From the IMG/VR virus record IMGVR_UViG_3300042549_005931, positions 186,001 to 250,000 of that record: a stretch of 64,000 bases of DNA; one strand, given 5' to 3'. The notes beneath the pieces are model-generated. The model saw nothing but the letters and a program-made list of their open reading frames with translations. It was not told the origin of the DNA and did no database searches. The position numbers and the translations under genes were made by a program. This document shows positions 15,106-29,170 of this stretch, piece by piece. Every line of letters starts with the position of its first letter. Positions within the stretch are counted from its first letter, which is position 1.

Positions 15106-16733
15106 TACTCTACATTTAATCCAATCTTATTTCCTTTTCCATCAACTGCATCTGCTAATTCAGTATAGAATAAACCTGCTGTATTTGTTAGTGGAACATT
15201 AGATGTGAAAGTTAATTTGTATGGTGTACCAGTTTTTATTCTAGCAGTTTTAATTTGGTCTATTGAACCAAATGTTAATCTTCCATCTTTATTAGTTGAG
15301 AAGTTAGTTATAGATGAACCCGCATCAAATGCAATACCATCCAATGTTAATTTAGAATCATCGTATTTCAAAATAACTTCTAATCCAGCTAATCCTTCTT
15401 GTGATAAATTACCCGTTAAAATAACTTTATTGTTTTCAATTTTAGATGATAAACTTAATGTTGCCGTTCCTGATAATTGATTAGCGTATATACCTTTATT
15501 TGCAACTGTTCTATTCATAGTTCCTTGTCCACCTGTACTATTTCCTGATATTGGTGAACCAGGGTTAGATGAGTGTGAGAAATCCAAATCACCACCAAAA
15601 GCGTATGAAAATAATTCTACTTGATTTGCCGAAGTTATTTTAACTACGTTGTTTGATGGTTCACCACCTACTATGTTTGGAAATGCCGATTGCTTTACCG
15701 ATATAAAATTTAATTCAGTTGCATTTTGTTTTGTTATTCTTGCTTTTGAAGATACATCTTGTCCTAAAATGTGTGCAAATAAGTAATAAGCATCATTTGT
15801 ATTAAAATCACCATCATTAAGTGTTACATTACCAATTGCCTTTTCTATTGCGGGATATTGGAATATAGATGATGTACCATTTAATCCAACATCTGTTACT
15901 GCTAAAAAGGCTCTATAGGCATCTGTTACTGTTACTACGTTATTTAAGTAACTTGCTCCAAAAGTTGGAACAATATAAACACCAAGTGTATCACCAATAT
16001 TAAATTGTTCAAAATCAACTATACCACCAGAACTTAATGGTTTTTGTGATATTGGTGCTCCAGTAAAGTTTGTACTTCCATTGGGATTTACTTTTCTTAT
16101 TTGTACGGATAGTGATGTAATATCAAAATTAGTTGGATACCCAACTTTTACTCTAAATGCTGAAACGTGCTTCACATCAGCATCTGCAAATGATAATTGA
16201 AGAACTTGAGAACCAATTGGTGTGATAGGTGCATCATTTGTTCCTGTTGCAGTTGCTAAATCTAATTTATGTATTCCTTGATAAGTTGAGTTTTCTAATA
16301 AGATAAATCTTTCAGTTGCCCACAAACCATCAATTACCGCATCTGCTCTTTGTGTTGTAAATTGCTTCGATATCCAATCGTTATCTTGTGTATAGTTCCA
16401 AGGTGTTGAAGCATATTGTGCATTCAATTCACCAACTCCAATTGATGGGTTTTGTGTGAATTTATAGTTTGGCCAAGTTGCTTCAAAATTTTGTGCGGTT
16501 TGTCCTTGTGAGAATAAAGTAGGTCCTAACTTTTGTAAGTGTTTGTTTGAGTATTGATAACGCATCCAAAGGTATCTAGGGTTTGTAGTTCCTTTGATAA
16601 TATTATATCTTACAGTAAGTGTGTCACCAACTCTGTAAGGTTTTGAATTAACCACCTCTTGATTGATGATTAATTGCCCAAATGATGTCAATGACATCAG
16701 TATTAATGAGAGAGATACTAATAGTTTTTTCAT
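15105..16733 (-). CDS. secreted dockerin-like + cohesin-like protein
   Basis: signal peptide; VTVTDAY...FNTNDAY; GLEVILKYD; paralogous C-terminal half to 13174..15105. Confidence 0.6.
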   Translation of the reverse strand: MKKLLVSLSLILMSLTSFGQLIINQEVVNSKPYRVGDTLTVRYNIIKGTTNPRYLWMRYQYSNKHLQKLGPTLFSQGQTAQNFEATWPNYKFTQNPSIGVGELNAQYASTPWNYTQDNDWISKQFTTQRADAVIDGLWATERFILLENSTYQGIHKLDLATATGTNDAPITPIGSQVLQLSFADADVKHVSAFRVKVGYPTNFDITSLSVQIRKVNPNGSTNFTGAPISQKPLSSGGIVDFEQFNIGDTLGVYIVPTFGASYLNNVVTVTDAYRAFLAVTDVGLNGTSSIFQYPAIEKAIGNVTLNDGDFNTNDAYYLFAHILGQDVSSKARITKQNATELNFISVKQSAFPNIVGGEPSNNVVKITSANQVELFSYAFGGDLDFSHSSNPGSPISGNSTGGQGTMNRTVANKGIYANQLSGTATLSLSSKIENNKVILTGNLSQEGLAGLEVILKYDDSKLTLDGIAFDAGSSITNFSTNKDGRLTFGSIDQIKTARIKTGTPYKLTFTSNVPLTNTAGLFYTELADAVDGKGNKIGLNVE

Positions 16734-17242
16734 AGTTTTTCCGTTAATTTGTTAATTAATGTTTGACATGTTTTTTTAATTGAAGACGAAAGTGCTTGTT
16801 GATTTATAGTTTCACTCGCCTCACCTGTTATTATTGTTGATGTTGAAACTTCCGAACTGGATTCTTCAGCCACATACTCTTTTATTTTCTTTCCTTCTTT
16901 GTTTTTTATTACTCCACGAATAACAACCAATGTTTCCTCAACGTCTGAGTGAAATACCGATACGTTACGTTTTGTTCTATTTACATCGAAGTATAGAATT
17001 TCTGCACTAATGACAAAATCTGCAGATTCTGAACTTTCTACAATGTCCAAATTTTTATCTTGTAAAATTTCTTGAAAAATATTCTTTACCCCGAAAGCAA
17101 AATTTCGATTGCCGGTAAACTTTCCTATTTTAATTTTATTGTCAACATTTGACACACACACAGTCTGAGCGACTGCACCAAAACCAGATATTAGCACAAA
17201 GAATGCCAGTATCAAAAAAGTGGAGAGAGGTACTTTTTTCAT
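16730..17242 (-). CDS. secreted protein, CsgG/LptE-like fold suspected
   Basis: signal peptide; first gene of the surface operon. Confidence 0.45.
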   Translation of the reverse strand: MKKVPLSTFLILAFFVLISGFGAVAQTVCVSNVDNKIKIGKFTGNRNFAFGVKNIFQEILQDKNLDIVESSESADFVISAEILYFDVNRTKRNVSVFHSDVEETLVVIRGVIKNKEGKKIKEYVAEESSSEVSTSTIITGEASETINQQALSSSIKKTCQTLINKLTEKL

Positions 17243-17337
17243 ATTCTATAAATATGTGTAAAATCATTTTAAGTACATCACATTTATGTTATATCACATA
17301 TCTCCAAAAAATATTTTAAATTATTTTTAATACTTTC

Positions 17338-17368
17338 TTGATTTTGTCAATACTTATATATACATTTG
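17338..17368 (+). promoter_or_regulatory. Bacteroidota-type promoter for leader 1/tRNA array 1
   Basis: TTG at 17338-17340 and TACATTTG (TAnnTTTG -7 element) at 17361-17368. Confidence 0.65.
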
Positions 17369-17390
17369 TAAAAATTAAATAAAACATTCA

Positions 17391-17492
17391 ATGAAACGCT
17401 TTACACATATCACGTTTACTACATTCGCAACCAAATGGTGTGCGATGGGTGAGATTGGTATGTCTCGAGGTTTCGATTGTAATATAGGATAG
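17391..17492 (+). CDS. attenuator leader peptide 1 (MKRFTHITFTTFATKWCAMGEIGMSRGFDCNIG)
   Basis: 33-codon ORF between promoter and terminator; codons match tRNA array 1; ends GGA TAG TAA. Confidence 0.8.
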   Translation: MKRFTHITFTTFATKWCAMGEIGMSRGFDCNIG

Positions 17493-17520
17493 TAAGAAAG
17501 TTTACATTAATATAATATAA

Positions 17521-17556
17521 GAACCTCGGGACAAAATCTCGGGGTTTTTTGTTTTT
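17521..17556 (+). terminator. attenuator terminator abutting tRNA-Ala
   Basis: GAACCTCGGGA-CAAAA-TCTCGGGGTT + T tract; 5' arm complementary to 17463-17473. Confidence 0.85.
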
Positions 17557-17626
17557 GGGCCGGATGTCAATGGCTGACCATCTGATTTGCAATCAGAATG
17601 AAAGGGTTCGATTCCCTACGTGTCCA
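17557..17626 (+). tRNA. tRNA-Ala(TGC)
   Basis: TCTGA-TTTGCAA-TCAGA anticodon arm, G3-U70, bulged acceptor stem. Confidence 0.8.
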
Positions 17627-17659
17627 CAGTATTAGTTCTTTGAAATCGTGGGTAAAATT

Positions 17660-17732
17660 GTCTATGTGGCGCAACGGTTAGCGCTCCGACCTGATACGTC
17701 GGCGGTTGGTGGTTCGAATCCATCCATAGACA
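17660..17732 (+). tRNA. tRNA-Ile(GAT)
   Basis: cloverleaf, loop CTGATAC. Confidence 0.92.
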
Positions 17733-17737
17733 CATTT

Positions 17738-17810
17738 GGAGACGTAGCTCAGTTGGTAGAGCACCGGCCTGAAGAGCCGGGTGTCGGTGGTTCAAATCCA
17801 CCCGTCTCCA
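17738..17810 (+). tRNA. tRNA-Phe(GAA)
   Basis: cloverleaf, loop CTGAAGA. Confidence 0.95.
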
Positions 17811-17816
17811 CATTTT

Positions 17817-17890
17817 GACCTCTTAGCTCAGTTGGTTAGAGCACCTCACTTTTAATGAGGGAGTCCCGCGTTCGAGTCGCGGAGGGGTCA
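17817..17890 (+). tRNA. tRNA-Lys(TTT)
   Basis: cloverleaf, loop CTTTTAA. Confidence 0.95.
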
Positions 17891-17895
17891 CACAC

Positions 17896-17967
17896 GCGTC
17901 TATGGTGTAATTGGCAGCATACCGGTCTCCAAAACCGGCGGTCGAGAATCGTTGTCTCGTGGACGTG
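17896..17967 (+). tRNA. tRNA-Trp(CCA)
   Basis: loop CTCCAAA; atypical T-loop ATCGTTG. Confidence 0.85.
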
Positions 17968-17972
17968 CAAAT

Positions 17973-18044
17973 AGTTCTATGGTGTAATGGATAGCACCTG
18001 ACACTACGGATGTCAAAGTTGGAGTTCGAGTCTCTATGGAACTA
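17973..18044 (+). tRNA. tRNA-Arg(ACG)
   Basis: cloverleaf, loop CTACGGA. Confidence 0.92.
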
Positions 18045-18052
18045 CGTTAAAA

Positions 18053-18127
18053 GGTGAATTGGCTGAGTGGTCAAAAGCAACGGTCTGCAAAACCGTACAA
18101 TCGTTGGTTCAAATCCAACATTCACCT
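18053..18127 (+). tRNA. tRNA-Cys(GCA)
   Basis: cloverleaf, loop CTGCAAA, U73. Confidence 0.92.
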
Positions 18128-18128
18128 C

Positions 18129-18203
18129 GGTGACTGTCGTCTAATGGTAGGACAAAGGTTTGTGGTGCCTTCAATAAGAGTTCGATTCTCTTCAGTCACA
18201 CCA
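18129..18203 (+). tRNA. tRNA-His(GTG)
   Basis: loop TTGTGGT, encoded G-1 and CCA. Confidence 0.9.
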
Positions 18204-18208
18204 TATAT

Positions 18209-18276
18209 TGCGGGGAGGAGGGTTCCCAACCAGTCTCATAAGCTGTGTTTTCCGGTTTCGACTACCGGCCCCGCAA
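18209..18276 (+). tRNA. tRNA-Met(CAT), atypical
   Basis: TGCGGGG/CCCCGCA acceptor, loop CTCATAA, shortened D-arm. Confidence 0.7.
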
Positions 18277-18340
18277 CAAAATATTTTAGATTTTTTTTAC
18301 ATATATTTTTTTATTTAAAAAACTTCTTTTATATTTGTCA

Positions 18341-18477
18341 TAAGATAATGGTTTTCACCATTCAACGGATGTCGACAATCCAGAGTGGAACCTGAAAACA
18401 TAACCCTCTGCCGAGCGCTCATAAAACTGAAGAAGCAGTCAAGAATGGAACGAAACGGGTATTCCATCATTATCTTA
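18341..18477 (+). ncRNA. unidentified structured RNA
   Basis: 12-bp closing stem TAAGATAATGGT/ATCATTATCTTA, internal stems, TATATTTG promoter just upstream. Confidence 0.55.
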
Positions 18478-18480
18478 CAG

Positions 18481-18554
18481 GCTCCCTTAGCTCAGTTGGC
18501 CGGAGCGCCTCACTTGTAATGAGGATGTCGGCGGTTCGAATCCGTCAGGGAGCT
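18481..18554 (+). tRNA. tRNA-Thr(TGT)
   Basis: cloverleaf, loop CTTGTAA. Confidence 0.95.
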
Positions 18555-18560
18555 CAACAA

Positions 18561-18701
18561 GGTTCTATAGTTGTTTAGGTCGCCCCTTAAACAATGAGTG
18601 GGTTAATGATGGTTTAGTATTACTACCCGATATTCTAGATGAAGCGTGGTAAGTGATTAAACAAGTAATTAACGAGATGGGTTCGATTCCCATTAGAGCC
18701 T
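18561..18701 (+). ncRNA. tRNA-like RNA (acceptor + T-arm, expanded interior)
   Basis: GGTTCTA/TAGAGCC acceptor, ATGGG-TTCGATT-CCCAT T-arm, no canonical anticodon arm. Confidence 0.6.
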
Positions 18702-18750
18702 CAAAACATAGGATTAATTACCCTATGTATGGATGGTTCGAAACATCCGA

Positions 18751-18824
18751 TTGATTATGGTGTAATGGTGCACGGAGACCGTAATTGGAGCTCAGGATTA
18801 AGGTTCAAGTCCTTTTTAATCAGC
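18751..18824 (+). pseudogene. degenerate tRNA
   Basis: TTGATTA/TAATCAG acceptor, TGGTGTAATGG D-arm, GGTTCAAGTCC T-arm, broken anticodon arm. Confidence 0.5.
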
Positions 18825-18829
18825 AACAA

Positions 18830-19215
18830 GTGACGACTGTGGTGTAACCCCACGGTATATGAAATCCAAAATGGTCCTGTTGAAGCCGGAATAGTCATAC
18901 AGGTCAGGAGAGAGTTAGTATAAGTTGGGAGTAATTAACCAATTGACGAAAACTAATCACCAAGAAATTGGTCATGATGTCCAACGGGGATAATAAACTT
19001 GTTAATTTGTTAATTTAAGTTCTGGTGGGTTTTATTAAATAATTTTGTTTCATTTTAAACAATTTTAGTTATAAGGAAGTTGAAGAATTGTAACCACCAA
19101 CATAGAAATTAGATTAACAAAGTTTAATTACGGGAGGTGTCTCGTATAACTAATACAATCCCCTAATAGGGACTGATGTAAGATTAAGATTCTTACGACA
19201 CCGAACGTGATTGGA
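18830..19215 (+). ncRNA. unidentified ~390-nt structured RNA
   Basis: nested long-range stems, no ORF. Confidence 0.45.
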
Positions 19216-19224
19216 TTATTAACC

Positions 19225-19299
19225 GCCCCTATCGACAAGCGGTTAAGTCACGTCCCTTTCACGGATGAGTCACGGGTTCGATTCCCGTTGGGGGTACCA
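19225..19299 (+). tRNA. tRNA-Glu(TTC)
   Basis: cloverleaf, loop CTTTCAC, CCA encoded. Confidence 0.95.
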
Positions 19300-19310
19300 A
19301 AAGTTTTATT

Positions 19311-19559
19311 ATGTTAGAACAAATATTGGAGTACTTTGGGGAAGAAGAATTTCTTAAAGCGGACGGATTCGATGAAGCCGTTATTGGTGTTGAAGAAAGT
19401 TCGATGAGACTAATCTATTCAGTTACCAAATGTCTTGAGATATTGGTTACCAATGAAGAGATGTCATTAGAAGAAGCTATTGAGTATTTTGACTTTAATG
19501 TTAGAAGTGCTTATGTAGGTGATAAAACACCCATTTGGTGTGAGGATGGTTTTATGTAA
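19311..19559 (+). CDS. hypothetical phage protein
   Basis: ADGFDEAVIG...EAIEYFDFNV...AYVG motif typical of large phages. Confidence 0.7.
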   Translation: MLEQILEYFGEEEFLKADGFDEAVIGVEESSMRLIYSVTKCLEILVTNEEMSLEEAIEYFDFNVRSAYVGDKTPIWCEDGFM

Positions 19560-19560
19560 T

Positions 19561-19749
19561 ATGAAAAAAATAATATATCTACTAATTGTAATTTTTACAT
19601 TATCCGGTTGTTTTACTTATGTAAGAGAAACTGGTAGATTTTACCCACGTAATAGAAATTTACAACCAAACCATAGAATGGGTATTAACGGTTACCATTT
19701 AAGAAATCAATATTATTTTAGACATATTCAACCATTAAAAAAAAGATAA
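19561..19749 (+). CDS. small lipoprotein
   Basis: MKKIIYLLIVIFTLSGC lipobox from ATG 19561. Confidence 0.6.
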   Translation: MKKIIYLLIVIFTLSGCFTYVRETGRFYPRNRNLQPNHRMGINGYHLRNQYYFRHIQPLKKR

Positions 19750-19791
19750 AGGATTGATTTTCAACATTTTTATATTTATAATAAAAAAGAT

Positions 19792-20139
19792 ATGTTAGAC
19801 TTAAAAGAACTTTTAATTATGCTAGGATTGGCGGTTGGTGGACCATCACACAGTCAAGATATGACTTTTTATCGACAAAAATTATCTAATGAAATGGTTT
19901 TAGAACAAAAACTAAAAGAAGAAATTAAAGCCTTAGAATATAGAAAACTTTGGGACGATGTAAATCAAAAAGAAAATGCAGATTTTGCAGTTAGGTGGTT
20001 TAAAGATAAAAAATCGGAAGATAAATTAGGTAGTTCAAAAAAAGATTTAAATAACACAAGAAAAAAAATAAAAGTATTAAAAAATATCCTTGAAAAAGAT
20101 TCATTAGATAAGGTAGTACCTCAAACTCAGGTACTTTAA
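19792..20139 (+). CDS. hypothetical coiled-coil protein
   Basis: ORF preceded by TATTTATA. Confidence 0.6.
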   Translation: MLDLKELLIMLGLAVGGPSHSQDMTFYRQKLSNEMVLEQKLKEEIKALEYRKLWDDVNQKENADFAVRWFKDKKSEDKLGSSKKDLNNTRKKIKVLKNILEKDSLDKVVPQTQVL

Positions 20140-20178
20140 TTTATTTTCGGATATTTATATATTATAAAAACAAAAATT

Positions 20179-20601
20179 ATGAAAAAATTATTATTTATTT
20201 TCGCGTTAGTTCTTGGTTGTACTTTTAGTTCAACTGCTCAAGAATTGTTTGGTTCCGCAACTAACAAAGGTATGGACGGATACTTAACTGGTGGTTACAT
20301 CAAAAAAGGATGGGGTGCCTATGTTGGTTTTAGATATGATGCTGACCCTATGGTTAGTACTAAAACAGGTAGCTTTGATAAAACTATGAAATTTGGTGTT
20401 ATTCGTATGTTTGCGAGTGAGAAAATTATGATGGGTGTGGGAATCCAACCTGTCGATAATGTTAACAAACCAAATGTTTTTATTGGTTACGCACCATTAA
20501 AATCGGAAGGATTGAAGATATGGGTTATTGGTAATTTAGTAGGTTCTAATTTTACACCAGGTCTTGGTTTAACTTATAAATTATCACAAATTAATTTTTA
20601 A
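20179..20601 (+). CDS. small outer-membrane beta-barrel-like protein
   Basis: signal peptide, Gly/aromatic beta strands, terminal Phe. Confidence 0.55.
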   Translation: MKKLLFIFALVLGCTFSSTAQELFGSATNKGMDGYLTGGYIKKGWGAYVGFRYDADPMVSTKTGSFDKTMKFGVIRMFASEKIMMGVGIQPVDNVNKPNVFIGYAPLKSEGLKIWVIGNLVGSNFTPGLGLTYKLSQINF

Positions 20602-20627
20602 AAATTTACTATTAAATAAAACTTTTG

Positions 20628-20635
20628 TATATTTG
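20628..20635 (+). promoter_or_regulatory. Bacteroidota-type -7 promoter element for leader 2
   Basis: TATATTTG 18 nt before leader ATG. Confidence 0.6.
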
Positions 20636-20653
20636 TATATACTTATTAGAAAA

Positions 20654-20758
20654 ATGAAGAATTTATTAACAACAATATCGCTTAGTTTGAACCCGTCATA
20701 TAATGATAATGGGAGAGGCGTGCAGACGTTAATAAGTTCGGACCAAATATTAGGATAG
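20654..20758 (+). CDS. attenuator leader peptide 2 (MKNLLTTISLSLNPSYNDNGRGVQTLISSDQILG)
   Basis: 34-codon ORF; codons match tRNA array 2; ends GGA TAG TAA like leader 1. Confidence 0.8.
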   Translation: MKNLLTTISLSLNPSYNDNGRGVQTLISSDQILG

Positions 20759-20781
20759 TAAATAAAAAAACTAAAATAAAG

Positions 20782-20822
20782 AAACCCGAACGACTTAAAA
20801 AATTGTTCGGGTTTTTTGTTTT
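20782..20822 (+). terminator. attenuator terminator before tRNA array 2
   Basis: AAACCCGAACGA/TTGTTCGGGTTT + T tract; 5' arm complementary to GTTCGG at 20736-20741. Confidence 0.85.
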
Positions 20823-20902
20823 AATGAAACTTTTACATATATTTGTAAAACAGTTCATCACATAGGTGGTGAAAAATGTTCTTTGACATTGTGAGAAAAA
20901 AT

Positions 20903-20987
20903 GCTCGGGTGGTGTAATGGTAGCCACGAAGGACTTAAAATCCTTTGGACAGAAATGTCCGTGCCGGTTCGAGTCCGGCCCCGAGTA
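20903..20987 (+). tRNA. tRNA-Leu(TAA)
   Basis: type II cloverleaf, loop CTTAAAA. Confidence 0.95.
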
Positions 20988-20989
20988 CA

Positions 20990-21099
20990 AATGTAATGAC
21001 TTAGAAATAAGTGACGGAACAGACGCTATGTATGAAATGGAAACTTTCGAAACTCGTATAAAAGAGTGAATTAGACACAAACCGTACAGACATTACATT
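20990..21099 (+). ncRNA. unidentified structured RNA between tRNAs
   Basis: AATGTAATG/CATTACATT closing stem, ACTTA-GAAA-TAAGT hairpin, ACGG/CCGT. Confidence 0.5.
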
Positions 21100-21104
21100 A
21101 AATT

Positions 21105-21178
21105 GGTTCCGTAGCTCAGCTGGATAGAGCAACTCTCTTCTAAAGAGTAGGTCTTTGGTTCGAATCCAAACGGAATCA
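21105..21178 (+). tRNA. tRNA-Arg(TCT)
   Basis: cloverleaf, loop CTTCTAA. Confidence 0.95.
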
Positions 21179-21183
21179 CATAT

Positions 21184-21258
21184 AGAGTAATGGGCTAATT
21201 GGTAAGCCGCTACATTTGGGTTGTAGACATCATGGGGGTTCGAGTCCCTCTTATTCTA
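21184..21258 (+). tRNA. tRNA-Pro(TGG)
   Basis: cloverleaf, loop TTTGGGT. Confidence 0.88.
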
Positions 21259-21266
21259 CATTAAAT

Positions 21267-21351
21267 GGTTTCGTTGCCGTAGTGGCCGAACGGTCCAGAC
21301 TGTTAATCTGGTGAGTAACATCCATCGTAGGTTCGAATCCTACCGAGACCG
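21267..21351 (+). tRNA. tRNA-Asn(GTT) with long variable arm
   Basis: loop CTGTTAA, G73, ~15-nt variable region. Confidence 0.85.
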
Positions 21352-21403
21352 CTTGACTTTTTCGAATATTTTATGTATTTATTGTTAACTAAAAAAATTA
21401 ATA

Positions 21404-21943
21404 ATGGGTAAGTACTTCGAAAAAATTATAGATTTAAGAAATCAAGGAAAAACATATAAGGAAATATGTGTTGAATTAAACTGTGCAATGTCAACAGTGT
21501 CATATCACTGTAAGTTAAATAAATTGGGTGGCCACACTGATAGACTGACAGATGAAGATAAGGTAGAACTTCAAAAATTATACAATGAAGTTGGCAGTTT
21601 AAAAAAAGTGGCTAAATTAAAAGGTTATGCATTTCAAACTGTTCAAAAATATGTAACAATAAAAAATAGAACAAAAAAAGTTTCAAAATCCGAAGCGGTA
21701 ATAGAATGGAGAAAAAGAACTAAGATAAAATTAGTTGAATATAAAGGTGGTAAATGTCAAATTTGTGATTACAATAAATCATTCAATGCATTACATTTCC
21801 ATCATATTAACCCAAATGAAAAAGATTTTTCAATATCAGGTAAATCATTATCATTTGACAAATTAAAAACTGAGGTTGATAAATGTATTTTAGTATGTTC
21901 AAATTGTCATTCTGAAATACATGAAGGTTTAATAACATTATAA
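21404..21943 (+). CDS. HTH + HNH homing-endonuclease-like protein
   Basis: CQIC...FHHINP...C.LVCSNCHSEIH; N-terminal HTH motifs. Confidence 0.85.
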   Translation: MGKYFEKIIDLRNQGKTYKEICVELNCAMSTVSYHCKLNKLGGHTDRLTDEDKVELQKLYNEVGSLKKVAKLKGYAFQTVQKYVTIKNRTKKVSKSEAVIEWRKRTKIKLVEYKGGKCQICDYNKSFNALHFHHINPNEKDFSISGKSLSFDKLKTEVDKCILVCSNCHSEIHEGLITL

Positions 21944-21944
21944 C

Positions 21945-22020
21945 ACCCTTATGGACAAACGGCAAAGTCACTGGTTTTAGGCACCAGGTTTTATAGGTTC
22001 GAATCCTATTAGGGGTACCA
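21945..22020 (+). tRNA. tRNA-Leu(TAG) with short variable loop
   Basis: loop TTTAGGC, 5-nt variable loop, CCA encoded. Confidence 0.85.
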
Positions 22021-22037
22021 ACTAAATTTTTAATATT

Positions 22038-22157
22038 ATGGCAGTTACATCAAAAAGAGTTGCAAAGAAAGCTAGTAAAGCTTTAAGTAGTAAAAAAACG
22101 AGTAAAACAACTAAGACTCTTGCAGGTAGTGCATTGAGACAAAGAAGAAAAAAATAG
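22038..22157 (+). CDS. small basic protein (MAVTSKRVAKKASKALSSKKTSKTTKTLAGSALRQRRKK)
   Basis: 39-aa ORF between tRNAs; not in ORF track. Confidence 0.7.
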   Translation: MAVTSKRVAKKASKALSSKKTSKTTKTLAGSALRQRRKK

Positions 22158-22162
22158 TAATT

Positions 22163-22245
22163 GGGAGTGTTGAGCAACGGTTGCTTAGCAGACTGTAAAT
22201 CTGTGGTCTACGACATTGGCGGTTCGAATCCGTCCACTCCCACCA
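22163..22245 (+). tRNA. tRNA-Tyr(GTA)
   Basis: type II, loop CTGTAAA, CCA encoded. Confidence 0.92.
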
Positions 22246-22258
22246 AAACAAAAAAACT

Positions 22259-22819
22259 ATGGAATTCATTTACAGAAGAGAAAACGTATTATCAAAAGAA
22301 CAATGTGATGAGATAATACAAAAGTTTGAAGAGTCTGATTTTAAATTGGCAGGTATTACCGCATCAGGTGTTAACGAATCTATTAAAAAATCTACAGACC
22401 TTACATTTCATCATAATACTTTAGATGATGAAAAAATTAATAATCTTTGGGGTGATACTGTTCGTAAAATTGTTCGTGATTTAAATTATCACATGAACAA
22501 ATACAAGGAGGAAAATGAATACTTGAAATTTTTTAAAATAGAGATGGATTCATTCAACATTCAAAAGTACGAACCAAATGGTGGATTTTATACTTGGCAT
22601 TGTGAAACCATTCATTGTTTAGATAGAGTTACCGCTTGGATGATATATCTTAATGATGTTGATGATGGTGGTACTGAGTTTATGAAACAAAAACACACGG
22701 AGAAAGCTGAAGCGGGTAAGTTAATTATATGGCCAGCAGATTGGACACATGCACATCGAGGTCAGGTTAGCACTACCAAAACAAAATATATTTTAACAGG
22801 TTGGTTTAGTCAAAAGTAA
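22259..22819 (+). CDS. 2OG-Fe(II) oxygenase (prolyl-hydroxylase-like)
   Basis: WHCE, YLNDVDDGGTEF, THAHRG, KYILTGW. Confidence 0.85.
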   Translation: MEFIYRRENVLSKEQCDEIIQKFEESDFKLAGITASGVNESIKKSTDLTFHHNTLDDEKINNLWGDTVRKIVRDLNYHMNKYKEENEYLKFFKIEMDSFNIQKYEPNGGFYTWHCETIHCLDRVTAWMIYLNDVDDGGTEFMKQKHTEKAEAGKLIIWPADWTHAHRGQVSTTKTKYILTGWFSQK

Positions 22820-22820
22820 T

Positions 22821-23387
22821 ATGGAATTCATTTATAGAAAAGAAAATGCATTATCATTAGATTTATGTAATGATATAATTACTAAATTTAATGAATCTAA
22901 TTTACCTGAACCGGGTGTAGTAGGAAAAGGTGTAGTTGAAGAAATAAAAAAATCGATAGATTTATCTTTCCATGCCGATTCATTAAACACTAAAGAATTA
23001 CAAGATATATGGGGTCCACCATTGGGTGAAAGTATTCCAATTATTAATTCATGTGTTCAAGAATATTGTGATAAATTTGAATATTTGAAAATGATGAGTT
23101 CATTTAAAATGGAAGCTTTTAATATTCAAAAGTATGAACCGGGTGGTGGATTTTATACTTGGCATTGTGAAGCTACTTTAAAAATAAGACGTGTTGTTGT
23201 TTGGATGGTTTATTTAAACGATGTTGACGATGGAGGAACCGAATTTATACATCAAAACCATATCGAAAAAGCGGAAGCTGGTAAATTATTGTTGTGGCCG
23301 GTTGATTGGACACATGCACATAGAGGACAAATTAGTTATACCAAAACAAAATATATTTTAACAGGTTGGTATTCTATACCCCAATAA
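22821..23387 (+). CDS. 2OG-Fe(II) oxygenase, tandem paralog
   Basis: same motifs, high identity to previous gene. Confidence 0.85.
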   Translation: MEFIYRKENALSLDLCNDIITKFNESNLPEPGVVGKGVVEEIKKSIDLSFHADSLNTKELQDIWGPPLGESIPIINSCVQEYCDKFEYLKMMSSFKMEAFNIQKYEPGGGFYTWHCEATLKIRRVVVWMVYLNDVDDGGTEFIHQNHIEKAEAGKLLLWPVDWTHAHRGQISYTKTKYILTGWYSIPQ

Positions 23388-23434
23388 TCGTTGAAATATA
23401 CGATAACAGATTTTATCGTTAGATTAAACGATAT

Positions 23435-23508
23435 GGACTTATAGCTCAGATGGTTAGAGCAGGTCGCTCATAACGACAAGGTCACAGGTTCGAGCCCTGT
23501 TTGGTCCA
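23435..23508 (+). tRNA. tRNA-Ile2(CAT, lysidine type; reads ATA)
   Basis: loop CTCATAA; GGACTTATAGCTCAG body resembles Ile2 rather than Met. Confidence 0.75.
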
Positions 23509-23588
23509 CAAAAAGTGTCTTGGTATGCTCTGACGAAAGTCAACGACAAGGTCTCGGTAGGCAGAACGCGTCTGATTCTACCCAAAAC

Positions 23589-23662
23589 AGAAGATTAGCT
23601 CAGTTGGTTAGAGCATTTGGTTTACATCCAAAGGGTCATAGGTTCGAATCCTATATCTTCTA
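23589..23662 (+). tRNA. tRNA-Val(TAC)
   Basis: cloverleaf, loop TTTACAT. Confidence 0.92.
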
Positions 23663-23729
23663 CAGAAAACTGAGATAGGATATTATTGATATGGATACAA
23701 TTCCTGATAATATTGCTACTCAGTTGATT

Positions 23730-23805
23730 GCGAAAGTAGCTCAGTTGGTAGAGCATTACCTTGCCAAGGTAAGGGTCGCGAGTTCGAATCTCGTTTTTCG
23801 CTCCA
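23730..23805 (+). tRNA. tRNA-Gly(GCC)
   Basis: cloverleaf, loop TTGCCAA, CCA encoded. Confidence 0.95.
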
Positions 23806-23919
23806 TAAGGAGCTCCCGCTTTAAGGTGAAGGACACGCGGGCGAATAACTTTCAGGGTAAGTTGTAAAAGAACTCGAAACCTTAAGTCTAGTGTGGGAGA
23901 GACTCCTACCCACACACAA

Positions 23920-23991
23920 GCGAATATAGCACAGCGGTTAGTGCTCTGGTCTTCCAAACCGGAAACGACAGTTCGAATCTGTCTATTCGCT
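23920..23991 (+). tRNA. tRNA-Gly(TCC)
   Basis: cloverleaf, loop CTTCCAA. Confidence 0.93.
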
Positions 23992-24000
23992 CTATTAATC

Positions 24001-24073
24001 GGGATTGAGGTCAAACGGTTAAGATGTCGCCCTGTCACGGCGCACGGAGCGGGTTCAACTCCCGTCAGTCCCG
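24001..24073 (+). tRNA. tRNA-Asp(GTC)
   Basis: cloverleaf, loop CTGTCAC. Confidence 0.9.
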
Positions 24074-24076
24074 CAT

Positions 24077-24147
24077 TCCTCTATGGTGTAACGGTAACAC
24101 AACTGTTTTTGGTGCAGTTATTCATGGTTCGAATCCATGTAGGGGGT
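24077..24147 (+). tRNA. tRNA-Gln(TTG)
   Basis: cloverleaf, loop TTTTGGT. Confidence 0.92.
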
Positions 24148-24150
24148 CAA

Positions 24151-24347
24151 TGAGTAAGAGATACTCAGCAGTCTTTAATCCAAGACTCATTTAAAAATGG
24201 ATAGGATAATAGACTGGACATCCTTAAACGCCAGTCTCTTGGGAATAAAGCTGGAAAATCGTCCTTGCTCCCAGTAACGATTGACTTTTTAATGAGGGAT
24301 GCCTCGCAGGTTTTTCAAACAGCTAAATAACCGAAATAACTACTCAC
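24151..24347 (+). ncRNA. unidentified ~200-nt structured RNA
   Basis: TGAGTA/TACTCA ends, GACTGG/CCAGTC hairpin, potential pseudoknot AATCGT/ACGATT. Confidence 0.55.
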
Positions 24348-24372
24348 ATATAATCTCAATGTGGGGAAACAA

Positions 24373-24454
24373 GGAGAGGTGGACAATGGTCGTTGAGCGG
24401 TCTTGAAAACCGTCGGGTGTAAAAGCTTTGCAGGTTCGAATCCTGTCCTCTCCG
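24373..24454 (+). tRNA. tRNA-Ser(TGA)
   Basis: type II, loop CTTGAAA. Confidence 0.9.
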
Positions 24455-24511
24455 CACCCTACAATCCCATGTCGGCTCGAGTGGGTGAGAGTATAGGTAT
24501 CGGGCCCTTAT

Positions 24512-24600
24512 AGAGGGTTGGGTGAGTGGCTTAAACCAGCAGTTTGCTAAACTGCGGATGGGGTTAAACCTGTCCACCGGTTCGAATCCGGTATCCTCTA
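24512..24600 (+). tRNA. tRNA-Ser(GCT)
   Basis: type II, loop TTGCTAA. Confidence 0.93.
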
Positions 24601-24614
24601 CACTATTTATATGA

Positions 24615-24809
24615 ATGATATTACAACTTAATCCAACAATACCAATTATACGTGTAAGTGACGGAATGAAAGGTTACGCATTTATGGTTATCGATTATTC
24701 TCAAGAACATGATTTATATTTCACATGTGGAATGGATGATGGTGAAATTTGGACATTAAATAACAAAGAAATTAGGTTACAAAATAACATTACGTTAAAT
24801 AGAAATTAA
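24615..24809 (+). CDS. hypothetical protein
   Basis: 64-aa ORF MILQLNPTIP... Confidence 0.7.
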   Translation: MILQLNPTIPIIRVSDGMKGYAFMVIDYSQEHDLYFTCGMDDGEIWTLNNKEIRLQNNITLNRN

Positions 24810-24812
24810 CAT

Positions 24813-24964
24813 TGTAGTGTGACGAAATTGGCAGACGTACCCTCCTGTCTCGGGGGTGTGGAACAAGAAATAGATTGATAATATTAGGGGGTAGACCACC
24901 AGCTTGCAAGCGTCATGTTATCAGTTGAATCTCCACTTGAGTGGTTCGAATCCCTCCACTACAG
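24813..24964 (+). ncRNA. tRNA-like RNA (GTC loop) with ~80-nt variable arm
   Basis: TGTAGTG/CACTACA acceptor, D-arm, CCCTC-CTGTCTC-GGGGG arm, long paired insert, GGTTCGAATCC T-arm. Confidence 0.7.
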
Positions 24965-24966
24965 CT

Positions 24967-25812
24967 ATGAAAATATTATTTATTAACGATTTCCAAGGTG
25001 TTGATTATTTAAATGATACCATATTTCACGGTGGACGAAGTCTATTTGGTGAAAATTTTGTAGAATCAAATGATGCTTGGTACATGTATGATGATATAAC
25101 ACCACACACCAAAAGTTCATTATATGGTATGGGGTTTACTATTGCAGGTAAATTAAATAGGATATCTATCGACACCACTAATATTCTTGAAAAAATTAAA
25201 GATAGGTTTTTTGATTTAATAATTTATGGTTCAGTTCATAGAAATATTTCTTATTTTGATGAAGTAATCAAATCATATAAATCAAATGAAATTGTTTTTT
25301 TAGATGGTGAAGATGAAACATATTTTAATGAAAAAATAATTGGATATGGGGTTTATTTTAAAAGAGAATTAATCAAAGAAAGAGAATGTGTTTTACCAAT
25401 AAGTTTTAGTATTCCAAAAGAATTGATTAATATTAATACATGTAAAGAAAAAGTTTTAGCAATGCCTTCATCTTATGAAACGGGATATATTTTTAATAAA
25501 GAAAATGATTATTATGAAGAATATAAAAAATCATATTTTGCATTAACAAAAAAGAAAGGCGGATGGGATTGTTTAAGACATTATGAAATATTAATGAATG
25601 GTTGTTTACCATTGTTTCATAATTTACACGAATTACCCAAAAATATAATGATTCATTGGGATAAAAATTTGTTACAAGAATGCCTCAATCTATTTTGGGA
25701 ATTCAGATTAGATGAACAAAAATACATAAATTTAAAATCTCGAGTTGTTGATAATCTCCATAATAATTTAACAACTGAAAGTATGGTTAATTATATATTA
25801 TCAAAATTATGA
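24967..25812 (+). CDS. putative glycosyltransferase
   Basis: true start ATG 24967 (MKILFINDF); KKGGWDCLRHYEI...GC.P GT-B-like motif. Confidence 0.6.
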   Translation: MKILFINDFQGVDYLNDTIFHGGRSLFGENFVESNDAWYMYDDITPHTKSSLYGMGFTIAGKLNRISIDTTNILEKIKDRFFDLIIYGSVHRNISYFDEVIKSYKSNEIVFLDGEDETYFNEKIIGYGVYFKRELIKERECVLPISFSIPKELININTCKEKVLAMPSSYETGYIFNKENDYYEEYKKSYFALTKKKGGWDCLRHYEILMNGCLPLFHNLHELPKNIMIHWDKNLLQECLNLFWEFRLDEQKYINLKSRVVDNLHNNLTTESMVNYILSKL

Positions 25813-25866
25813 TAGGACACTACAGCTAAACCATTAAAATATTAATTGATAAAATGAAAAAATAAA

Positions 25867-26328
25867 ATGAAACAATTCAAAACCCTCCATGGTAAACCGA
25901 TACCAGAGGTTGTAGAGTACATCAAGGATTACATCTCAACAAGAGAGAATGTTCAAATTCTCATCGGTTCCGACTCACAATGTTATGCTAACACAAAGAC
26001 CGTTTACGGTGTTGTTATTGCTCTTTACACTTCCGGTAAAGGTGCACATGTATTGTGTACACGTGAGACGGTTCCTATGGAGAGGAATATGAATCTTCGT
26101 TTAATGACTGAAGTTTGGAAGTCTATTGAACTTGCAGAATATCTTAGAGAAAACGGTATTCAAAAAGCCGACTTTATTGATATTGATTTAAACCCTGATA
26201 GAAAATACAAATCAAACAGTTCTTTAAGACAAGCAATTGGTTTTGTTGAGGGTATGGGTTATCAAGCAAGATGGAAACACGAAGGTGCAATTATAACATA
26301 TGCCGCTAATCATTTAGTAAGATTATGA
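25867..26328 (+). CDS. RNase H-like YkuK (DUF458) family protein
   Basis: IGSDSQ...RLMTEVWKS...IDLNP motifs. Confidence 0.75.
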   Translation: MKQFKTLHGKPIPEVVEYIKDYISTRENVQILIGSDSQCYANTKTVYGVVIALYTSGKGAHVLCTRETVPMERNMNLRLMTEVWKSIELAEYLRENGIQKADFIDIDLNPDRKYKSNSSLRQAIGFVEGMGYQARWKHEGAIITYAANHLVRL

Positions 26329-26527
26329 GCAAGGATATGGACCGTCTTAGTGAAGACAATTACAAACAACGAAATGAATCTTATATTCAGAGACTTCGAG
26401 ATGAACGTGAAGAGAAATTAAAGAAACGTTATGAAGAATTGAGAGGAACAAAACTGGAAGAAAAAAAAGAAGATAAATGATTTCGTATTTTAAAATTTTT
26501 TATTTATATTTTTAAAAAATAAGAAAT

Positions 26528-26737
26528 ATGAAATGTATCAAAAGTAAAGACGGTGAGATTCGTCGAGTGTCAGATGTAGATGCTGACAACAAAGTTAAAG
26601 TACATGGATGGAAGTTTGTACCGAAGTCTGAATGGAAATTAAACGTAAGAGGTTCGGTAAATGTTAAACAAAACGCACCGAAAGAAAAGAAAGAAAAAGT
26701 AGTTAGTGAGTACAAAGAAAAAAAATCAAAAAAATAA
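26528..26737 (+). CDS. small basic hypothetical protein
   Basis: IRRVSD...GWKFVPKSEWK. Confidence 0.65.
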   Translation: MKCIKSKDGEIRRVSDVDADNKVKVHGWKFVPKSEWKLNVRGSVNVKQNAPKEKKEKVVSEYKEKKSKK

Positions 26738-26835
26738 TTTAATATATTTTGTTTTTTAAATTTTTTTTCGTAAGTTTGTAAAAGAAATCACAACGGTGGT
26801 TTTTTAAAAGAGAAAGTTCTTTGAATTAAAGATAT

Positions 26836-27603
26836 CGGCGGTCTATAGTCGTTAAATAAACTACGAAAGTAGGATAAAGTGAATCGAAAGTTATAAACGG
26901 TTTGCGGTTTCGGTAACGGAACTCGAGTAGACAAGCAAGACATCATCTGTCCTTAGTTCCGAGGGTAACACTGTAGGAAATGGATAGGTGACTTGGCAAT
27001 CTGAGTTGTCAAGTTGAGGTGGGAACACTAATAAGAGTAACTTGTGGAACTTTACAAGAAATGGGACCTCCAATCTCACTATTGTGTTGTTCAATATCAT
27101 GGGTACCTTAAAATCGAAAGGTATGGTGAAGTACGAGTGGTGTCGTTATCATCCTTAATAAAACCCTACCAAGAGTTTTATTTTGAAGGTGTCCAAAAGT
27201 ATGGAGGTTGGGAGACTTCAGAGAGTAGTTTAGTATTCTGTTGTTCAAAAGATAATGGAGCTGGCAGACGGGCCACTACTTTCAAGATTCGGAAACAAAA
27301 AACCCTTACAATGGTGTAAATCAAAAAAAAGGAAAAGTGCTCGTCAGTCGTTGGAAACAGGTGACTACATAGTCGTGAGATGTTCACGGCCATAGAAGAC
27401 CCCAAGTCCGATATGATTTTTGAGAAAAGTTCTATATAGTGCGGCGGTATTGTATAGAGAAGAGTAACGAGAGAGTATTCAACGACTTAAGGATTGGTTA
27501 ATCTAATTGACCGTCACTGATTGGTACAGTTCAAAAGACTGTGGATAAGAGAAGAATCAATAATGTCTCTAAAGTCAATCACAAAATGGTGTAATCTCAG
27601 CCA
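26836..27603 (+). ncRNA. giant structured ncRNA, GOLLD-like
   Basis: ~770-nt purine-rich non-coding tract with many hairpins, own TAAGTTTG promoter and boxA-like site, near tRNA arrays of a phage. Confidence 0.6.
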
Positions 27604-27736
27604 AATTAAAAAGACATTTTTAGGTTTCTTGGAACCATAATAATCCAAGTGGTGGAATTAACCTTAATCGGTTGGCCCTTAGGGATGGAGAAATCTATCC
27701 CTTTTTTTATTCATTTATTTTATTTATATTTGTTTT

Positions 27737-28483: not shown

Positions 28484-29135
28484 TGTAGTTATCTCAACAA
28501 GAGAAATTGATAATGATTATTTGAAACATGTTAGTAAGGTGTTTTCACATCCTAAAACTGAAATCATTATTTACGAAAACCAAGGTGATTTTTCGTTACC
28601 TGAATTGTATAATAAGGGATTAAAGGATTCAAAAAATGAGGTTGTTGTGTTCATGCACGATGACCTCATCATTGAAACACCTAATTTAACCCCCAAAATC
28701 TTACGACTGTTCAACGATAATCCTGAGTATGGTATAATCGGTGTTGCCGGTACTGATAATCTCCTGAGTGGAATGTGGTGGCAAGATAGAGAATCTATGC
28801 AAGGTCAAGTCGGTCATGAACATGAAGGAAGAAAACATACCAACAAATACTCCGGTACATTTGGTGAAAACTTAAAAGAAGTTGTTGTAATTGATGGTTT
28901 GTTTATGTGTATTCATAAGGAGAGAATTAAACATAACTTCAACGAACAATTTGAAGGATTTCACTTCTACGATTTACCAATCTGTTTGGAGAATTATCTT
29001 GACGGAGTAAAAATTGGTGTAACAACCAAAATTAAATTAACACATAAGTCAATTGGTGTTACAAATAAAAAGTGGGAGAAAAATAAGTTGTTATTTGAAG
29101 CTCTATATGAGAAGAAATTACCAATTAAGATTTAA
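28470..29135 (+). CDS. glycosyltransferase (GT2-like)
   Basis: YNKGL, FMHDD, IDGLF, FHFYD motifs. Confidence 0.75.
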   Translation: MNPISVVISTREIDNDYLKHVSKVFSHPKTEIIIYENQGDFSLPELYNKGLKDSKNEVVVFMHDDLIIETPNLTPKILRLFNDNPEYGIIGVAGTDNLLSGMWWQDRESMQGQVGHEHEGRKHTNKYSGTFGENLKEVVVIDGLFMCIHKERIKHNFNEQFEGFHFYDLPICLENYLDGVKIGVTTKIKLTHKSIGVTNKKWEKNKLLFEALYEKKLPIKI

Positions 29136-29170
29136 CCCTAATAATCAAATATTTATATATAAAAAACATT

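Follow-up and report, generated by a model that had tools for sequence, protein, structure and literature searches.

In front of each of its two tRNA arrays, this large phage carries a short ORF that uses at least one codon for every tRNA in the array, followed by an intrinsic terminator, and the arrangement is best explained as a ribosome-mediated transcription attenuator whose regulated genes are tRNAs (probability of about 0.7). The window, a 64,000 nt stretch of IMG/VR virus record IMGVR_UViG_3300042549_005931, contains both units. The correspondence between leader codons and downstream tRNAs is real and far beyond chance, and the design recurs in relatives and in independent leader families; in contrast, translation of the leaders, the direction of the switch, and its trigger are inferred without expression data. 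No earlier description was found in the papers that could be searched.

Architecture of the two leader-array units

Both ORFs were confirmed as proposed in the first-pass annotation (window:17391-17492 with 33 codons and window:20654-20755 with 34 codons), each ending GGA-TAG-TAA and each followed by an A/T-rich spacer of about 20 nt and an intrinsic terminator (Table 1). The annotated tRNA counts, 11 and 14, were also confirmed; together, the arrays cover all 20 amino acids with no shared anticodon except CAT. However, two members of array 1 are weak calls, where the Ala-like tRNA (17557-17626) scores 32.5 bits in Rfam and the CAT-like tRNA is found only by ARAGORN at an 80% threshold. The best matches of the array 2 CAT tRNA in the E. 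coli collection are annotated tRNA-Ile.

The first-pass annotation also placed a TAnnTTTG promoter before each ORF. By count, the motif is not enriched in the window; however, the leader 1 box is conserved at a fixed distance from the start codon in 37 homologues, and TAnnTTTG is the flavobacterial sigma-A consensus (PMC9723704). The promoter-like region of leader 2 is absent, together with the ORF, from three related loci (L006, L041 and L043; L numbers denote the compared loci), and in leaderless relatives the same terminator 2 directly follows the 140-aa ORF. The element homologous to the one inside array 1 heads the shortened locus L006, which lacks leader 1.

Table 1. Coordinates of the leader-array features within the window.
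Feature	Coordinates	Strand	Description
Promoter-like region of leader 1	17335-17373	+	Bacteroidota sigma-A -7 box TACATTTG at 17361-17368; repeat family D2
Segment 1 of leader 1	17386-17402	+	Start-codon region, able to pair with segment 2 and the bases after it
Leader 1 ORF	17391-17495	+	33 codons plus TAG TAA
Segment 2 of leader 1	17461-17473	+	Antiterminator strand inside the ORF (core GTCTCG), ending 16 nt before the stop codon
Intrinsic terminator 1	17519-17556	+	17519-17549 (13 pairs; 5' arm 17520-17532, 3' arm 17537-17549), then the T-tract; abuts the first tRNA
tRNA array 1	17557-19299	+	Ala-TGC (odd), Ile-GAT, Phe, Lys, Trp, Arg-ACG, Cys, His, CAT-like (18209), Thr (18481), Glu (19225); includes unnamed structured stretches
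Promoter-like element inside array 1	18307-18343	+	Before the Thr and Glu part; D7, D11
Promoter-like region of leader 2	20605-20636	+	TATATTTG at 20628-20635
Leader 2 ORF	20654-20761	+	34 codons plus TAG TAA
Segment 2 of leader 2	20736-20742	+	Invariant GTTCGGA, a copy of the core of the terminator's 3' arm
Intrinsic terminator 2	20779-20817	+	5' arm core 20785-20791, 3' arm core 20805-20811, T-tract 20812-20817
Conserved spacer between terminator 2 and tRNA-Leu	20818-20902	+	Promoter-like TATATTTG (20838-20845), hairpin (20854-20873), element GTTCTTTGACAT... (20878-20902)
tRNA array 2	20903-24601	+	Leu-TAA, Arg-TCT, Pro, Asn, Leu-TAG, Tyr, CAT (probably Ile2), Val, Gly-GCC, Gly-TCC, Asp, Gln, Ser-TGA, Ser-GCT; interrupted by an HNH ORF and two 2OG-Fe(II) oxygenase ORFs

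Leader codons match their own arrays

Leader 1 has 24 of 32 codons served by array 1, including codons 2-19 without a break, and samples 11/11 of its tRNAs (all 10 non-CAT tRNAs), while leader 2 has 29 of 33 codons served by array 2 and samples 14/14 (all 13 non-CAT tRNAs). Compared to background fractions of 0.43 and 0.57, the binomial p-values are 2.6e-4 and 1.3e-4, the joint simulation p-values are about 1.25e-5 each, and each leader ranks first among 217 short ORFs of the window. Moreover, each leader avoids the other array's codons (Fisher p = 2.6e-7), and the isoacceptor distinctions noted in the first-pass annotation hold (CGC/CGA versus AGA, and ATC/ATT versus ATA). In a cross-table of 8 leader/array pairs, the own array is the best match for 7 leaders, although between 13% and 42% of leader codons belong to other arrays.

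Recurrence and covariation of leader and array content

About 33 leader 1 variants and 23 distinct leader 2 regions were found in relatives. In every complete related locus, all non-CAT tRNAs of the own array are sampled (10/10, 13/13, 11/11, 12/12 and so on), where the one miss is a dubious Val-GAC. Further, unrelated leader families show the same correspondence. In particular, L032:2828-2890 samples 7/7 (p = 1.6e-3), and L160:4280-4411, a 43-codon leader with all 20 amino acids, samples 22/22 before a single 23-tRNA array (p = 3e-4). The cultured Cellulophaga phages phi4:1 and phi17:2 also carry the design; phi4:1 has L233:4432-4500 (7/7) and L233:5392-5475 (9/9), with joint p of about 1e-5 each. 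In five of the leader families, the terminator abuts the first tRNA. As a negative control, small ORFs next to the tRNAs of Vibrio phage Ceto show neither enrichment nor terminators.

Leader content follows array content over deep divergence. In the window clade, array 1 has Thr and lacks Asp and Ser-TGA, and its leader 1 has 6 Thr codons with one Asp and one Ser; in contrast, in the clade of the related locus L042, array 1 has Asp and Ser-TGA and lacks Thr, and its leader 1 has 4 Asp, 4 Ser and 2 Thr. Similarly, the L154 array gained Pro and His, and its leader has P and H, which the L152 leader lacks. Over short times, however, the leaders follow the arrays only loosely and do not track recent tRNA gains and losses: L125 and L128 share a leader although Thr sits in different arrays, the L061 arrays lack Phe and Lys tRNAs yet the leader keeps F and K, and L155 and L157 keep codons for tRNAs that have been lost. 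Some relatives have arrays without any leader (L156, L159, L041, L043 and phi4:1 sub-array C).

Signs that the ORFs are translated come from their retention in more than 50 variants, from in-frame indels, and from pN/pS ratios of 0.33-0.46 for leader 1 in the homologous L042-type clade and 0.12-0.25 for leader 2 in the L042-type subtypes, the only groups scored.

Complementarity between leader and terminator

The first-pass annotation proposed that a late segment in each ORF is complementary to the terminator's 5' arm. In leader 1, the complementarity is strong, where segment 2 forms a 13-bp duplex with the 5' arm at -21.8 kcal/mol, as compared to -15.5 for the terminator (codon-shuffle p = 0.003). 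Its nucleotides are invariant, though the core is read in different frames in the two clades, indicating conservation at the RNA level. Antiterminator pairs 126-187 (GC 20, AU 11, GU 6) and 127-186 (AU 18, GC 14) covary; 86.7% of cells are paired against at most 45% when the partners are slid, and 0 of 500 shuffles reach the observed value. The terminator shows compensatory covariation at the same arm columns across 37 sequences, with 99.3% of cells paired. Segment 1 is paired in the MFE fold of the leader alone, and the homologous pairing with segment 2 is kept in 95% of cells across 37 sequences, but without covariation.

In leader 2, the complementarity is weak. Segment 2 is invariant in the 9 aligned homologues, including its synonymous positions, and matches in all 23 regions apart from the last base in one; it forms a 6-8 bp duplex with the 5' arm, with one flanking pair that covaries, but in the window alone the duplex is only 6 bp and not significant (p = 0.3).

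Proposed mechanism

In the proposed mechanism, the first two thirds of the leader act as a codon sampler, followed by segment 2, which copies the terminator's 3' arm and so can pair with the 5' arm, and by a stop codon 10-20 nt later. If all sampled codons are read quickly, the ribosome would run over segment 2 to the stop codon, segment 2 would be covered or would re-pair with the start-codon region, and the terminator would form, ending transcription before the tRNAs. If any sampled codon is read slowly because its charged tRNA is scarce, the ribosome would lag upstream, segment 2 would pair with the 5' arm as it emerges, and the polymerase would read through into the array. The result would be negative feedback that matches each sub-array's output to the decoding demand for exactly the codons it serves.

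A footprint model of leader 1 is consistent with this mechanism; the antiterminator is free for A-site codons 2-21, which is exactly the own-codon block, and blocked for codons 23-31. However, in the equilibrium model the leader 1 antiterminator also forms with no ribosome present and with the ribosome on the stop codon, and termination in the replete state therefore needs kinetic assumptions, either timing or the unproven pairing of segments 1 and 2. Moreover, the first-pass annotation's description of the leaders as gating the arrays is too strong for array 2 and for the distal part of array 1, because promoter-like elements lie downstream of the terminators, including one in the conserved 85-nt spacer before tRNA-Leu. 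The leaders may therefore only add to a basal level of transcription, and gating of array 2 may be only partial.

Alternative explanations

The same cis-device could be triggered by host defence, as suggested in the first-pass annotation, with anticodon nucleases or other tRNA-depleting systems stalling ribosomes on the leader and switching on the sub-array that replaces the damaged tRNAs. The architecture would respond to loss of any sampled tRNA, the split into sub-arrays with their own leaders allows selective induction, and phage tRNAs are proposed to counter tRNA-targeting defences (PMC10264068). This trigger remains tentative: nothing in the sequences points to a nuclease rather than ordinary supply and demand, and as the ribosome reads host and phage tRNAs alike, late-infection codon demand would act the same way.

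It is unlikely that the terminators mainly insulate the arrays from upstream transcription while the ORFs are ordinary micropeptide genes, or stabilising ORFs, whose composition drifted toward the neighbouring tRNAs. Terminator 2 does simply end the 140-aa gene in leaderless relatives, promoter-like elements follow it, and the peptide cores are conserved; but unrelated peptides in at least five families each sample all tRNAs of their own array, including Trp, Cys and His, for which a functional peptide gives no reason, and the conservation of segment 2 across two reading frames and its covariation with the terminator arm also count against this reading. A translation-independent RNA element, acting through T-box-like codon-anticodon contacts or as a nuclease entry site, is more doubtful still. 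The motifs GTCTCG, GTTCGGA and AGGATAG are conserved regardless of reading frame, but no T-box or other cis-regulatory family matches at E<=1, the sampled triplets all lie in one frame between an ATG and a stop codon, indels are in frame, and pN/pS is below 0.5. Chance resemblance, favored by nothing beyond the small size of each ORF, is refuted by the joint p-values, the ranking among short ORFs, and the recurrence in independent families and in a cultured phage.

Comparison to known systems

The leader-peptide attenuators of amino-acid operons (trpL, hisL, pheL, thrL, and the multivalent ilvGMEDA leader) combine, as inferred for the phage units, a short translated leader, an intrinsic terminator and a mutually exclusive antiterminator that uses the terminator's 5' arm, with ribosome position deciding the outcome and, here, a possible pairing of segments 1 and 2 (the pheL scheme is in PMC3082878); the thr and ilv leaders probably already sense two or three amino acids. 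In the phage units, the regulated genes are tRNAs rather than enzymes, the leader holds one to a few codons for each of 7-22 different tRNAs with isoacceptors told apart instead of a run of one codon, segment 2 lies upstream of the stop codon, and the device sits in phage genomes. Flavobacteria show leader-peptide attenuation before amino-acid operons (PMC9723704).

The pheM-pheST attenuator and T-box riboswitches share the logic that the state of the tRNA pool feeds back on genes supplying the translation apparatus. However, pheM senses one codon type and controls a synthetase, T-boxes bind uncharged tRNA directly without a ribosome, and here the tRNA genes themselves are the output. An engineered his-leader attenuator in Salmonella, a laboratory construct that tests one codon at a time, shows that such a leader reports the decoding speed of whatever codons are placed in it (PMC4046918), which is the property a natural sampler would exploit. 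Phage tRNA arrays have been viewed as codon compensation or as a counter to tRNA-targeting defences (PMC10264068), and the papers that could be searched describe no cis-regulatory leader ORF in front of them. As in other large tRNA clusters, the present arrays are found in a big, AT-rich phage, where they sit next to GOLLD RNA and a tmRNA.

Organization of the tRNA arrays and their leaders

The window is part of the 269-kb viral contig IMGVR_UViG_3300042549_005931, and its G+C content is about 33%. ARAGORN and Rfam find its tRNAs in two blocks that are separated by four small protein ORFs. Array 1 holds Ala-TGC (a weak, odd tRNA), Ile-GAT, Phe, Lys, Trp, Arg-ACG, Cys, His, a CAT-anticodon tRNA seen only at a relaxed threshold, Thr and Glu; array 2 holds Leu-TAA, Arg-TCT, Pro, Asn, Leu-TAG, Tyr, a CAT tRNA, Val, Gly-GCC, Gly-TCC, Asp, Gln, Ser-TGA and Ser-GCT. 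Together, the two arrays cover all 20 amino acids and share no anticodon except CAT. Each block is preceded by the same four elements: a TAnnTTTG box, a 33- or 34-codon ORF ending GGA-TAG-TAA, an A/T-rich spacer of about 20 nt, and an intrinsic terminator. A conserved element, GTTCTTTGA[A/C]AT..GTG.G.AAAAT, lies about 25 nt before the first canonical tRNA of both arrays and is present in all leader-2 loci; it could be a processing signal or a promoter part.

Features of the tRNA loci and their surroundings (L-numbers are other loci; other coordinates are those of the window)
Feature	Coordinates	Strand	Remarks
ClpB-like double AAA+ protein	3474-5495	+	
Leader 1 ORF	17391-17495		33 codons
(T)AGGATAG motif	17485-17492, 20751-20758; L032 about 2872-2880		3' end of three unrelated leader families, in different reading frames
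Terminator 1	17519-17556		T-tract ends at 17556; first tRNA starts at 17557
tRNAs of both arrays	17557-24601	+	
tRNA-Ala(TGC)-like gene	17557-17626	+	First gene after terminator 1; 32.5 bits
Conserved element before first canonical tRNA	17635-17659, 20878-20902		
CAT-like tRNA of array 1	18205-18280	+	
Structured or tRNA-like stretches	18561-18704, 18745-18822, 18826-19220, 24810-24970		Inside and after the arrays; 18826-19220 conserved in L006
Leader 2 ORF	20654-20761		34 codons
Terminator 2	20779-20817		
HTH+HNH endonuclease-like ORF and two tandem 2OG-Fe(II) oxygenase paralogues	21404-21943, 22259-22819, 22821-23387		Inserted between tRNAs of array 2
GOLLD RNA	27221-27603; also L029:15313-15696, L041:13605-14011, L042:14121-14529	+ (window)	280 bits; 2.6 kb downstream of array 2
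tmRNA	29469-29870	+	TACATTTG box at 29447-29454, 15 nt upstream
Glycosyl- and methyltransferase cluster	36808-44084	-	
L032 leader	L032:2828-2890		20 codons
L160 leader	L160:4280-4411		43 codons
phi4:1 leader A	L233:4432-4500		Unannotated in GenBank KC821632
phi4:1 leader B	L233:5392-5475		Inside annotated gp075
phi4:1 annotation issues	L233:4432-4500, 5356-5475, 7484-7585		Leader A unannotated; gp075 probably starts at an internal GTG; gp076 overlaps a tRNA-Ser(TGA) found by ARAGORN

The identities of some tRNAs are less certain than those of others. The tRNA-Ala-like gene has a G-U-rich acceptor stem, although its first 18 nt are identical in about 70 related contigs and it is the only Ala tRNA of the set. 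The CAT-like tRNA of array 1 has no match in E. coli and may be Met or Ile2; for this reason, ATG and ATA codons were left out of the cross-locus counts. In contrast, the CAT tRNA of array 2 best matches genes annotated tRNA-Ile, which fits the exclusive use of ATA for Ile in all leader-2 variants.

Correspondence between leader codons and tRNAs

Codons were assigned to tRNAs by standard wobble rules, with U34 reading all four codons of a family box. In leader 1, 24 of 32 codons are served by its own array, with codons 2-19 unbroken, and 11 of 11 tRNAs are sampled; in leader 2, 29 of 33 codons are served by its own array, and 14 of 14 tRNAs are sampled. The isoacceptor choices fit as well: CGC/CGA versus AGA, ATC/ATT versus ATA, TTA/TTG plus CTT, TCN plus AGT, and GGC plus GGG/GGA. 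Each leader avoids the codons of the other array. Using the codon usage of the window's 51 long ORFs as the background, the joint probability of this enrichment plus full coverage is about 1.25e-5 for each leader, while the 2x2 Fisher test gives 2.6e-7. Moreover, each leader ranks first among all 217 ATG ORFs of 25-60 codons in the window.

Related loci

A DNA search of the locus against cultured phages, both near and distant, returned only tRNA-level hits, and there is no cultured close relative of the window phage. Relatives were fetched using three anchors: the 140-aa ORF between the arrays, the first 18 nt of the odd tRNA-Ala, and a 67-aa ORF next to another array. A neighbouring 542-aa gene was uninformative as an anchor, because most relatives lack tRNAs at that position, and about half of the metagenome hits to the 18-mer were high-GC chance matches and were discarded. 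This search gave about 33 distinct leader-1 peptides and 23 distinct leader-2 regions. In every locus where both arrays are complete, every non-CAT tRNA of an array has a cognate codon in its own leader, with the single exception of a doubtful Val-GAC.

Leader 1 falls into two clades whose codon content follows the content of their arrays. In the window clade, array 1 contains Thr, while Asp and Ser-TGA are in array 2, and leader 1 has 6 Thr codons with one Asp and one Ser, both late. In the clade of the related locus L042 (about 51% identity in the neighbouring protein), array 1 contains Asp and Ser-TGA, while Thr is mostly in array 2, and leader 1 has 4 Asp, 4 Ser (three of them TCN) and 2 Thr codons.

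Unrelated leaders precede other arrays. For example, the L032 leader samples all seven tRNAs of its array (Tyr, Trp, Cys, Ser, Thr, Glu and Gln), and in L154, which has a variant of that leader, the array also holds Pro and His and the leader contains P and H. The L160 leader has all 20 amino acids and samples 22 of 22 non-CAT tRNAs of a single 23-tRNA array (p = 3e-4). The cultured Cellulophaga phage phi4:1 (L233; and phi17:2) has the same design twice, behind a repeated promoter: leader A precedes Pro, Glu, Gln, His, Leu-TAG, Leu-TAA and Arg-ACG (7/7 sampled), and leader B precedes Ala, Lys, Ile, Gly, CAT, Asp, Thr, Val, Arg-TCT, CAT and Tyr (9/9 sampled), with a joint p of about 1e-5 for each. 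In a cross-table of eight leaders against eight arrays, the own array is the best match for seven leaders, while the eighth prefers the homologous array of the window. As a negative control, the small ORFs between the tRNAs of the T5-like Vibrio phage Ceto show neither terminators nor enrichment.

However, the correspondence has limits. The same leader occurs with arrays that differ in where Thr sits (loci L125 versus L128); the L061-type arrays lack Phe and Lys tRNAs, but their leader keeps F and K; and loci L155 and L157 keep codons for tRNAs that have been lost. Several relatives (L006, L041, L043, L156 and L159) have arrays or terminators without a leader. In L006, the leader-2 terminator directly follows the 140-aa gene, and the leader-2 cassette is therefore an indel placed in front of an existing terminator.

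Evidence for reading of the leaders as codons

Translation of the leaders is inferred from sequence conservation. The ORF is intact in all variants, and length changes are in frame. The pN/pS ratio is 0.33-0.46 for the L042-clade leader 1 and 0.12-0.25 for the L042-type leader-2 subtypes, the window-type leaders not having been scored. The recurrence of the (T)AGGATAG motif is unexplained.

A candidate RNA switch

Each leader contains a copy of the core of its terminator's 3' arm (segment 2), located 10-20 nt upstream of the stop codon. The segment 2 cores are GTCTCG in leader 1, GTTCGGA in leader 2, TAGGGG in the L032 type, GGGAGG in phi4:1 A, and CTAGGGG in phi4:1 B. In the window's leader 1, the duplex of segment 2 with the terminator's 5' arm is 13 bp at -21.8 kcal/mol, which is stronger than the terminator (-15.5 kcal/mol), with a codon-shuffle p of 0.003. 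In other leaders, the duplex is 6-9 bp at -10 to -14 kcal/mol, which is weak for any single sequence; in leader 2, it is only 6-8 bp with one covarying flank, which is inconclusive on its own.

The GTCTCG core is read in different frames in the two leader-1 clades (S-R-G versus S-L-E), and it is therefore kept as RNA and not as peptide. Because of this frame difference, a MAFFT alignment of the two clades together misaligns segment 2, and covariation was counted within the 37-sequence clade only. Across these 37 aligned leaders, two antiterminator pairs covary with the terminator arm (GC 20, AU 11, GU 6; and AU 18, GC 14), 86.7% of cells are paired, against at most 45% when the partners are slid, and 0 of 500 shuffles reach the observed value. 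The terminator covaries at the same arm columns, with 99.3% of cells paired. The sequences are related and the changes may trace to only a few events, making this good support but not proof. The start-codon region can also pair with segment 2, as in the MFE folds, with 95% of cells paired but without covariation, and a conserved internal hairpin is predicted.

Inferred mechanism

A simple footprint model of the window's leader 1 shows that the antiterminator can form while the A site is on codons 2-21, which is the block made only of own-array codons, and that it is blocked on codons 23-31. However, the antiterminator also forms with no ribosome present and with the ribosome on the stop codon, so that equilibrium folding does not by itself explain termination in the replete state. 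Termination must therefore rest either on timing, with the ribosome over segment 2 when the 5' arm emerges, or on re-pairing of segment 2 with the start region. For leader 2, the model gives the classical picture. It is inferred that a delay at any sampled codon favours read-through, so that each leader sums decoding time over the codons its array serves.

Gating would be direct where the terminator abuts the first tRNA, as in the proximal part of window array 1, L032, L160 and phi4:1. It is doubtful for array 2, where a conserved 85-nt spacer with a promoter-like box intervenes, and for the Thr/Glu part of array 1, which is preceded by a promoter-like element. In L042-type loci such as L046 and L050, 50-100 nt with TTTGGCA/TGCCAAA inverted repeats ending in ...TATAAT lie between the leader-1 terminator and tRNA-Ala, and may be an operator or an extra promoter; they are absent from the window.

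A T-box riboswitch is not supported, as Rfam gives no T-box or other cis-regulatory hit in 15000-32000 at E<=1. The sequence does not distinguish between supply/demand feedback and host tRNA-targeting defence (PMC10264068) as the physiological trigger. A bolder and still doubtful reading is that these phages carry modular decoding stopwatches, in which each leader sums the decoding time of one codon for every tRNA it controls; the phage would thereby detect loss of any single tRNA species, for instance through host anticodon nucleases or phage-induced host tRNA turnover, and re-supply exactly that subset. If so, this would be the first natural attenuator whose output is tRNA, the first with more than 20 inputs, and a general regulatory principle of tRNA arrays in phages of Flavobacteriia.

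Comparison with known attenuators

The inferred device would work like the trp, his and ilv attenuators, with which it shares a conserved short ORF, codons that correspond to what the downstream genes supply, an intrinsic terminator and, for leader 1, an antiterminator segment. It differs from them in that its output is tRNA, whereas the genes regulated by all classical members encode amino-acid biosynthesis enzymes or synthetases; in that its input is 7-22 codon types, with isoacceptors told apart, and not a run of one; in that segment 2 lies upstream of the stop codon; and in that it resides in phage genomes. Full-text literature searches found no description of leader ORFs in front of phage tRNA arrays. 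A Phe-rich leader was also looked for in the 100 nt upstream of pheV in E. coli K-12, and none was found there or in the literature searched.

Phage tRNA arrays have been debated for fifty years, as codon compensation or as a counter to host defence, yet almost nothing is known about how they are regulated. A leader that samples one codon for each downstream tRNA would show that the phage measures decoding capacity codon by codon and adjusts its tRNA supply to match, widening attenuation from sensing one to three amino acids to sensing up to the full set of twenty, and from enzyme genes to the tRNAs themselves. The design also offers a simple sequence signature for finding regulated tRNA sub-operons in metagenomes, a natural multi-input sensor of translation speed of possible use in synthetic biology, and, in Cellulophaga baltica with phage phi4:1 or phi17:2, a cultured system for the question of why phages carry tRNAs.

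Host and genomic context

TAnnTTTG is the flavobacterial sigma-A box, and leader-peptide attenuation is reported for amino-acid operons of Flavobacterium (PMC9723704). The 67-aa ORF next to the L032-type arrays has cultured homologues almost only in Flavobacterium phages. The GOLLD RNA keeps its position next to the tRNA arrays in relatives, and the phage-encoded tmRNA, whose tag peptide is predicted by ARAGORN, is also present in loci L029 and L042. The structured or tRNA-like stretches have acceptor- and T-arm-like ends and long inserts, and neither Rfam nor default ARAGORN names them. Further away, the ClpB-like protein and the cluster of glycosyl- and methyltransferases are typical auxiliary genes of jumbo phages.
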